From the NCBI RefSeq assembly GCF_964188315.1, contig NC_135660.1:496001-560000 (forward strand): a stretch of DNA of 64,000 nucleotides, written 5' to 3'. The position numbers and the translations under genes were made by a program. The notes under the pieces were generated by a model. That model was not told where the DNA came from. It did not search any database and saw nothing but the letters and a program-made list of their open reading frames with translations. Below are positions 32,701-38,663 of the stretch, one piece after another. Each line of letters begins with the position of its first letter. Within the stretch, counting starts at the first letter, position 1. The stretch comes from Podarcis muralis. Taxonomy: Eukaryota.

Positions 32701-35700
32701 GAACCGGAGAATAGATGAGCCTGCAGGATCAGGCCAGTGGCCCCTCGGGTCCAGCATCCTCTTCTCACAGGGGCCGACCAGCGGTCTGTGGGAAACCAGC
32801 AAGCAGATCTGAGTGCAAAAGCAGCCCCCCCCCCTGCAGAATCCAGAAGCATCGCTGCCTCCAGCTGTGGAAGCAGAGCTGAGCCCCCCTGGCTAGGAAC
32901 CTTTGCTAGCCCTCCTCCTTCTCTTTTAAAGCCATCTAGATGGGCTACTGCCTCCTGTGGCAGGGAGTTCCACAGTTCCACTATGTTCTGGGTGGAAAGG
33001 GGCTTACTTTTCTCTATCCTGAATCTTCCAAGATTCTTCTTCTCATTGGTTGCCCACGATCTCTGTTACGAGAGAGGAAAGAATTTTTTTCTCCATTCTC
33101 TCTCACGCAATGCATAATTCTACAAACTTCCATCATTGCACCCGTTACTCGCCCTTTCTCTAAACTGGAAAGTGCTGCAACGGTTCTTCACAGGGGAGTC
33201 CTGCCACCCCCTTCCTTGTTTTGGCTGCCCTTTTCTGAAGGGGAGACGGAGCCTGAGAGCCGTGGGGCTTCCGGGACGGTGTTTGCTTTTCCACCCGGTA
33301 TTTGGGAGGCGAGACCCCGCTGGGGTGTTGGTGCCGTGCTGCTGTGTGGGCGTCTCACGGCCGTGCTGCTTCTTCCCACAGTGCGCAGCAACGACAGCGG
33401 CTTCCAGCACAGCAGGGAGCAGCTGGCCTCTGCCGTCTCAGCCAGCACCTTGTATGAGCCAGGTGGGTTTTGCGGGCGGAACGCCAATCTAGGCAGCCTG
33501 GCATGGCCAAACCGTTGTCTCTCCCCTCCCCGCTGTGTCCCAAAGGTTTTGTTCCCTGTCCGCCACCTCCAATCCAGACCCCAGGGGCGTACAACTCTAC
33601 AATAGAAGTGTAGAGTTGCCACCACGAGGGTCACCCAGTCCAACCCCTTGCAATGCCAGGATCAAAGGAGCATGGGGAACTGACGTTATTTGCCTGTTTT
33701 TTGCCCTTCTGTTTGCCCTTTTGGAGCTCTTCACCATCTCTCCGTTTCAACCGCCCTGAACAATTTAGCGTCACCAGCAAACTTGGCCCCCTGCCTGCTC
33801 ACCCCTGACTCTAGATCCTTTATGAACAATTTAGAATAAGCCCCGGTCCCAGTCCCGATCCTTGGGGGACTCCGCTTTCTCCCTTTGGAGAACTGTCTGT
33901 GGATTCCTACTCTCTGCTTCCTGAAACTCAACCCACGAGAGGACCTCTCCTCTTCTTCCTCCTCTGCTAAGCTTCCTCGGGAGTCTGGGGTGAGGTGCTT
34001 TGTCCAAAGCCTTTTGAAAGTCCACCGGATCTCCTCTCTCTGTGAAGGGTGTTTGGGGAGTCACACCACCTCCTCCTCCCCCCTTCCAGAGGCTGAAAGG
34101 CCTGAGGCTGCTGCTTCCGCTTCCCGAGACGCCCGGCCAGATGTTCCGGGGCTGCAGCTGTACTTGGCCTCCTTCCAGAAGAGCCTTCCTGGCATGGCTG
34201 AGGCGCTGGCGCACGGGGCGGACGTCAACTGGGTCAATGCAGCAGAGGGCAGGTCCACGCCGCTGATCCAGGCCGTCCTGGGGGTGAGCCTTGCTTTCTT
34301 CTGGCCCCATAGTGCCAGGCAGCTGGCGGAGGTGGAGAGCCAGGGGGTGGGTCCGAGGCCGCCTTTGGGCTCCCAGCTCAGCTGTGGTCTTCTCCGCAGG
34401 GCTCCTTGGTCACTTGTGAATTCCTGCTCCAGAACGGGGCCAACGTGAACCTCCGGGACTCCAAGGGCAGGGGCCCCCTCCACCATGCCACCGTCTTGGG
34501 GCACACCGGGTAGGTGCGCTTCTCGTTGCCCTTCTTGGTGGGGGTGGGGAGGAAGGGCCTTGAGAAGCCTCTGCATGGTGCTTATTTGGAAGGAGTCTTT
34601 TCTGTGGTGGCTCCCCATCCGTTTGGGGGGTGCTCTCCCCAGGGAGGCTCACCAGACACCTTCGCTGCATCTCTTTAGGCAAAAATGTTCTTTTTCTCCC
34701 AAGCCTTTGGCTAATTAAACAATCTGCATTTTAAGCTGAGGCCAAGGCCTTATTTTTTGTTTGTTTGTTTGTTTGTTTGTTTGTTTGTTACCTGTATGTT
34801 TGTATGTTGTGTCTTTTTATTGTAAAAAGGGAAGTTTTTAACATGTGATATTTTATTGTATTTTTGGTTTTTATGGAAGCCGCCCAGAGTGGCTGGGGAG
34901 GCCCAGCCAGATGGGCGGGGTATAAATAATAAATTATTATTATTATTATTATAAACCGCCCTGTGATCCTTGGATGAAGGGCAGCGTAGAAATTTAATGA
35001 AGAATGGCCATTAATGAATTAGCAGAGTAAGGGGGAATGGCCAGGCCTGGAGGAGAGCAAGGGGGGTCCTGCTTTGTGGGAGAAGAGATGGAAGGCATGC
35101 AGCTGCTGGGTGACCTTGGGCCAGTCACACTTCTTTGAGGTCTCTCAGCCCCACTCACCTCACAGAGTGTTTGTTGTGGGGGAGGAAGGGAAAGGAGAAT
35201 GTTAGCCGCTTTGAGACTCCTGAAGGGGAGTGAAAGGTGGGATATCAAATCCAAACTCCTCCTCTTCTTCTTCGCAGGCAGGTGTGTTTGTTCCTGAAAC
35301 GGGGCGCCAACCAACATGCCAAGGACGAGGAAGGGAAGGACCCCCTGAGTGTGGCCATTGAAGCTGCCAACGCGGATATAGTGACGCTGTGAGTAAGGCT
35401 GGGACCGCGCCCCCCAAGTTGGCACCCCAGGGGCAGAGTTGCCCTGTCAGACCACAGAGCCTGTCAGCTCAGAGTGGGGCTCAGTGGCCGGGGGGGGGGT
35501 CAGAGTGGGGATGGAAGAGCTCAGAGGGGCGGGTGGTGGGTGCTGCAAGGCCACCCACTTCAGGTTCCGCCCCACCTCACCCTGTGCCCTCTTCCCTCTC
35601 CTTCTCACAGGCTGCGCTTAGCCAGGATGAACGAGGAGATGCGGGAATCCGAGGGACTCTACGGCCAGCCAGGTCAACCTTCCAGTAACCCCACTGAGAT

Positions 35701-38663: not shown

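Follow-up and report, generated by a model that had tools for sequence, protein, structure and literature searches.

A weak splice donor and two conserved C-terminal arms at the 3′ end of the ACAP2 orthologue in Podarcis muralis

Can the last exons of a single gene encode the C-termini typical of two paralogous proteins, and, if so, is this a peculiarity of the given gene or an inherited property of the family? The question arises at a locus of Podarcis muralis lying within the 64,000-nucleotide stretch of DNA analysed here (hereafter the window, the coordinates of which are used throughout), where a sequence-only reading had noticed a weak 5′ splice site at the end of exon 22 and proposed that splicing from it yields a tail of the ACAP1/2 type while reading through it yields the tail of ACAP3. 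ACAP2, an effector of Rab35, and ACAP3 are Arf6 GTPase-activating proteins engaged in endocytic recycling and neurite outgrowth; to our knowledge, published functional work appears to have used one form only of each protein. We consider it highly probable that the locus is the 3′ end of an ACAP2 orthologue, in which the weak donor chooses between the ACAP1/2-type spliced tail and the ACAP3-type read-through tail, that both arms are coding, that this layout predates the duplication of the genes, and that the spliced form is dominant with the other one arising by retention of the whole intron.

Inspection of the sequence confirmed the features of the ACAP2 3′ end base for base, all of them on the + strand. 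Exon 21 (35277-35388), encoding the last ankyrin repeat, is delimited by an RNA junction and shares 92% identity with camel ACAP2 and 94% with king cobra ACAP2 versus 72-81% with ACAP3-type loci. It is followed by exon 22 (35611-35672, acceptor AG at 35609-35610), which is common to both isoforms, has both of its flanking junctions represented in RNA and encodes a peptide identical to residues 130-150 of PDB chain 6if3_A (ACAP2 complexed with Rab35); the peptide of exon 23 is identical to residues 151-174 of the same chain at 24 of 24 positions. Since exons 22 and 23 coincide with 6if3_A and exon 21 is closer to ACAP2 than to ACAP3, the window gene is assigned on sequence grounds as the orthologue of ACAP2 (centaurin-beta2); a 10-residue motif is common to it and the king cobra, as would suit a squamate. 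The upstream part of the gene was traced by tblastn with Suncus ACAP2 (P0312), which gave 21 collinear + strand matches between 15646 and 35752, covering query residues 18-780 with gaps (the largest one spanning residues 529-561). Window exons were searched singly by reference, so that the gene body, which encodes the BAR-PH-ArfGAP-ANK part on the same strand as the C-terminal exons, is known as a set of separate exon matches. The mapped coding part (15646-38663) takes about 23 kb in DNA of 55-62% GC, the camel gene model being about 62 kb long. A low-complexity (CTC)n run at 35239-35277, just 5′ of exon 21, draws hundreds of partly fitting foreign reads and inflates the first bin of RNA depth, and a TTCC-rich short tandem repeat, which translates as SFLPSFLP..., is found in intron 22 at 37833-37923 and was passed over as repetitive when reads were placed.

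The two arms diverge at the donor CAG/GTCAAC (slash, exon boundary), the intronic hexamer of which occupies 35673-35678 and, having C at +3 and A at +5, is far from the consensus GTRAGT. Beyond it the reading frame of exon 22 stays open (35612-35755), and the extension (35673-35758) adds G and 26 further residues before a TGA at 35756-35758; the remainder of intron 22 (35759-38559, GC 0.62) would serve as the 3′ UTR of the unspliced form, if used. The acceptor cttgcag ends at 38559 and opens the coding part of exon 23 (38560-38663, TGA at 38661-38663), so that the spliced tail consists of G and 33 residues and has a close variant, DETYLDIFRDFS, in the ACAP1 chains 3jue, 4f1p and 3t9k. Thus the weak donor, the tails of 27 and 34 amino acids and the ACAP1/ACAP2 type of the spliced one, all of them asserted by the sequence-only reading, are borne out. 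According to the proposed scheme, use of the donor would let exon 23 supply the ACAP1/2-type tail, a segment included in the ACAP2 construct of the Rab35 co-crystal, and, if the donor is left unused, the ribosome would read 26 more codons into intron 22 and produce the ACAP3-type tail.

The origin of the latter tail was addressed by a word search, for which the 47-residue read-through ORF served as query. It found 37 short ORFs in genomic contigs of other organisms with 63-85% BLASTP identity; the frame stays open through the whole tail in 36 of them, P0037 being the exception. Longer proteins were brought in by a profile search of 1.84 billion representatives, in which nothing matched beyond vertebrate-type tails; P0001 was left out of the profile, as its contigs (L001-L006), present in many metagenome samples, may be host DNA, possibly human, and were kept out of the analysis. 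Among these longer proteins the ACAP3 of Tamandua (XP_077007740.1) and that of Ophiophagus (ETE60511.1) both end in the read-through motif, while Camelus ferus EPY85285.1, named “Centaurin beta 2 isoform 1-like”, combines an ACAP2 body with a read-through-type tail. A search restricted to the tail with an ACAP3 query returned at least about 120 entries for sauropsid ACAP3, named or unnamed, that carry the motif; among the matches listed only sauropsid ACAP3 was present, ACAP2 isoforms being not visible there and brought out by a second tail search that used the C-terminal 108 residues of an ACAP2 model from catfish. In alignments, the motif T-E-x-Q-Y-[RK]-[KR]-C-[IM]-[QE]-E-F-I follows a shared LRLA[RK]M...G segment and is present in the window tail as well as in the named ACAP3 proteins P0058, P0046 and P0183. 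The window keeps every invariant position of the tail motif (T, E, Q, Y, K, C, E, F, and I) as well as the place of the stop; it has lost the Tyr codon that almost all other sequences carry after Gly-Gln. The source names of the matched longer proteins identify the read-through tail as a homologue of the ACAP3 type, and its proposed likeness to the ACAP3 C-terminus is thereby upheld.

Usage of both arms in this organism was assessed over 35200-38900 in two stranded raw-read RNA runs and two contig runs with spliced joints. The junction 35388-35611 is crossed by 25 and 30 reads in the raw runs and has a depth of 141 and 116 in the contig runs; for the junction 35672-38560 the corresponding values are 11 and 18 reads and depths of 77.2 and 137.7. 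Unitigs crossing the donor unspliced extend over 35644-35882 (depth 12.9) and 35644-36480 (depth 15.6), which, set against the spliced path (12.9 versus 77.2 and 15.6 versus 137.7), puts the unspliced path at about 10-14% by contig depth. Hence the spliced form dominates in this organism. RNA contigs span most of intron 22 with short gaps between pieces, its remaining part showing depth of 13-29 in contig pieces, versus 77-141 in exon contigs, and depth of 0-10 in the raw-read runs. Immediately downstream of the donor, in the bin 35696-35819, depth is 12.4 and 14.9 in the contig runs and 0.94 and 0 in the raw runs, the latter two values being lower than those of the remaining intron; a poly-C run together with the 1-5% divergence from the window that most reads of the sequenced individuals show may depress raw depth in this segment. 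Two further departures from the window were met in the RNA. Exon 22 carries three synonymous differences within 19 bases (G>C, C>G, and C>T at 35644, 35650, and 35662), found in all reads of one RNA run and about 60% of another, the two contig runs matching the window, which points to a divergent haplotype or population under the same species label. Between 38116 and 38190, 52 or 73 bases are missing from the RNA contigs of two studies, in one case with 20 other letters in their place, this being probably a polymorphic intron indel and not a splice.

As for the way in which the read-through mRNA is completed, the statement that intron 22 has no AATAAA was correct and may be extended: neither AATAAA nor ATTAAA occurs on the + strand between 34928 and 44325, so that intron 22 and the first 5.6 kb past the canonical stop are devoid of a canonical poly(A) signal. 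No cluster of molecule ends was detected in intron 22 in the RNA runs either, and a short composite exon ending at a poly(A) site within the intron was rejected on both counts. The read-through form therefore seems to result from retaining all 2.9 kb of intron 22, not from polyadenylation within it. This mode, suggested earlier, gains from coverage along the intron and from the missing poly(A) signal and end cluster, although the nearly empty raw-read bin past the donor does not agree with it. The RNA data fit a minor form retaining the whole of intron 22, mature mRNA and pre-mRNA looking alike here; the transcript support for the read-through peptide is thus modest, a minor unspliced fraction that is indistinguishable from pre-mRNA, and, as no library type is recorded for either contig run, the RNA over intron 22 could come from nuclear pre-mRNA. 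On the preferred reading the unspliced RNA would be exported and translated in this organism, for which constraint on the codons gives indirect support.

The most serious rival holds that the read-through ORF, functional in ancestors and in other lineages, is an unused relic in this species, the intron signal being pre-mRNA and no such protein being made. Dominance of the spliced junction, raw-read depth of 0-1 right past the donor and the loss of the Tyr codon in the window speak for it, as does the decay of the tail in a related squamate. In the draft assembly of Ophiophagus hannah (king cobra), ACAP2 has a degenerate read-through tail (L014:1254-1400) behind intact exons 21 and 22; substitutions affect the invariant Met, Arg, Cys, and Ile, and a 2-nt insertion is present, reflecting either loss of the arm in snakes or an assembly error, and the read-through arm can on this example be lost within squamates. 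In the window, however, every invariant residue of the tail motif and the stop position are preserved, and in two independent studies coverage of intron 22 amounts to 10-20% of the exon depth, against zero depth in the intron 21 bin of all four runs. Taking both sides together, we regard a relic as unlikely and retain the reading in which both arms are coding sequence.

Selective constraint on the arms was evaluated among ACAP2-type loci: the window, the camel (L010, read-through tail 71843-71989 and spliced-type exon 77558-77635), and two fish loci, L007/L008 (9986-10132 and about 11760-11840) and L012 (1881-2027 and 6138-6233). In DNA alignment of the window, camel and L007, similarity spans the segment between acceptor and stop codon, the stop included, and collapses immediately beyond it. 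For the read-through tail, Nei-Gojobori estimates among the ACAP2-type loci give pS of 0.56-1.0, that is near saturation, and pN of 0.12-0.20; between window and camel, differences fall on 13.5 of 13.8 synonymous and 8.5 of 64.2 non-synonymous sites. The spliced arm is tighter still (pN 0.00-0.06), and for bird versus fish ACAP3 both arms show pN of 0.09-0.10 and pS of 0.66-0.94. Because similarity ends at the stop and pN is far below pS, the segment behaves as a translated exon and not as an intron, and the read-through extension is true coding sequence under purifying selection; the in-frame conservation of 35673-35755, by which the sequence-only reading had made its proposal testable, held in ACAP2 of the camel and two fishes. 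A chance ORF in a GC-rich intron is ruled out by the same two properties of the cross-species comparison. A non-coding role of 35673-35755, for instance as an intronic splicing regulator by the weak donor instead of a protein tail, could account for the strong conservation of the donor and the next bases down to a synonymous codon choice, but is very improbable given that differences concentrate at synonymous sites, that frame and stop position are kept in mammal, reptile, and fish with similarity ending exactly at the stop, and that mammalian ACAP3 is annotated with this peptide as its sole C-terminus.

With both arms taken as coding, the next point is when the choice between them emerged. 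Both are present at ACAP3-type loci too. The fish locus L011 has a read-through tail at 10079-10225 and an intact spliced-type exon at 14069-14173, and ACAP3 of the bird Turnix velox (L015) has its read-through terminus at 8982-9128, the donor CCAG/GTCAATAT, and an intact spliced-type exon 5.3 kb downstream, after “gtgtttttgcag”. The paralogue of L011, L009, keeps the read-through tail and a spliced-type exon that is diverged and open; this last exon (L009:15070-15156, ITSCTVIFREFPLMALH...) is strongly diverged, has a good acceptor and an open frame, and is used by the UniProt model P0069. In Tamandua ACAP3 (L013) the GT at the junction is lost and no spliced-type exon was found within 10 kb downstream, so the tail is constitutive there; among the loci examined, only this mammalian ACAP3 is without the spliced arm. 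A maximum-likelihood tree of 20 proteins, which held ACAP2 and ACAP3 and no ACAP1, separates the ACAP3 clade from the ACAP2 clade at 100/100 support, with both tail types within each. Since both arms occur at ACAP2 and at ACAP3 loci, the two-arm switch is older than the ACAP2/ACAP3 duplication and has mostly been kept in both paralogues, one-arm states being lineage-specific exceptions among the vertebrate ACAP2/ACAP3 loci examined.

These results divide the evolutionary part of the earlier proposal. Presence of the switch before duplication is supported by the loci and by the tree. The statement that the paralogues fixed one arm each does not hold, as ACAP3 of the bird and of one fish locus (L011) keep both intact arms, the spliced arm of L009 being diverged; nor is possession of both arms a distinction of the window ACAP2, which is not special in this respect, the camel and two fish ACAP2 genes having both as well. 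The expected remnant exon downstream of ACAP3 exists as a spliced-type exon in Turnix, L011, and L009, and not in Tamandua over the 10 kb inspected. Common origin of the two tails themselves by tandem duplication was also considered and is not supported, the register Y-RKCIQEF / Y-QDIFRDF obtained in a profile-profile comparison with hhalign being not significant (P = 0.17).

The weakness of the donor is itself shared. Compared with CAG/GTCAAC of the window, the mammal, bird, and fish loci examined have CAG/GTCAAT, so that CAG/GTCAA(T/C) is found in seven of seven loci (the window, camel ACAP2, two fish ACAP2-type, two fish ACAP3-type, and the bird ACAP3). The Gln codon at the donor is CAA in all seven and never CAG, which would strengthen position +5. 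The invariant CAA fits, and so hints at, selection for a weak donor, the seven loci being few and related. A tentative and rather doubtful extension of this is that CAG/GTCAAY, kept suboptimal for more than 400 million years in ACAP2 and ACAP3, constitutes a regulated switch swapping the C-terminal segment adjacent to the ankyrin repeats, that the isoforms of each paralogue couple Arf6 inactivation to different partners, and that mammalian ACAP3 and possibly snake ACAP2 are independent one-arm resolutions of it.

What the exchange of tails might bring about was approached with an AlphaFold2 model of the shrew ACAP2 ankyrin domain carrying the read-through tail, built from a 38-row alignment (mean pLDDT 87). 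Tail residues 157-173 form a helix (block pLDDT 83) and linker residues 144-153 are of low confidence, so that a flexible linker leading into a helix is predicted for the read-through tail. With VIA-align the model superimposes on ACAP1/ACAP2 crystal chains with Z of 24-25 over about residues 3-144 only, the tail helix being aligned to no solved ACAP chain. In the Rab35/ACAP2 structure, the canonical tail helix reportedly contributes to Rab35 binding. A review maps Rab35 binding no further than to the ankyrin region. A conserved choice between two tails beside this domain could tune partner binding, and replacement of one tail by the other may change it.

The read-through isoform of ACAP2 is already in the public annotation of many vertebrates. 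Besides the query, 119 proteins were among the matches listed for the catfish ACAP2 tail search, and 117 of the 118 best matches checked (P0198-P0315) have the read-through tail, these being ACAP2 proteins of mammals and fishes. RefSeq entries of the “ACAP2 isoform X” kind with the tail come from macaque, gibbon, capuchin, vole, spiny mouse, shrew, catfishes, herring, and cichlids, UniProt entries from pig, baboon, marmot, and beaver, and in several fishes the entry named simply ACAP2 is the read-through form. The annotated isoforms are computational models. Public sequencing runs yield Logan contigs of some 3 kb and 7 kb whose products, 767-802 residues long, end in the read-through tail, and such contigs must be spliced cDNA; cDNA-like Logan contigs encode products of about 790-800 aa with either tail, and one 90% cluster holds both tail forms. 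A literature search found no paper describing or testing the ACAP2 read-through isoform experimentally. The observation as such is therefore ordinary, since public annotations contain the isoform: it is a real, ancient alternative C-terminus that is not peculiar to this gene copy and is already in the databases. Added here are the purifying selection on both arms, the conservation of the donor in its weak form, and the finding that bird and fish ACAP3 have the same switch, which makes it an ancestral feature and not a peculiarity of the window gene.

Compared with known systems, the locus stands closest to the ACAP2 isoform models themselves. Those of Suncus etruscus (X2), Macaca fascicularis (X12/X15), Microtus (X8), Tachysurus (X1/X4), and Clupea (X3/X5), the UniProt/Ensembl entries of Sus scrofa, Papio, and Marmota, and Camelus ferus EPY85285.1 all have the same exon 22 read-through, tail motif (TEMQY[RK]KC[IM]QEFISLQL), and stop position; unlike all these, the window tail is without Tyr after Gly-Gln and reads QPSSNP. 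With the C-terminus of ACAP3 the window shares a homologous peptide from the equivalent exon, and bird and fish ACAP3 have the same weak donor inside it, although a tail of this type is constitutive in Tamandua ACAP3 and is the minor arm in ACAP2. The canonical ACAP1/ACAP2 tail (6if3 for ACAP2; 3jue, 4f1p, and 3t9k for ACAP1) is identical or close to that of exon 23 and is the alternative to the window read-through tail. In general terms, the in-frame extension past a weak donor, the early stop, and RNA over the intron bring the locus near to the class of alternative C-termini produced by retention of the last intron, whereas from composite terminal exons with intronic polyadenylation it differs in that intron 22 of the window has neither a poly(A) hexamer nor a cluster of read ends.
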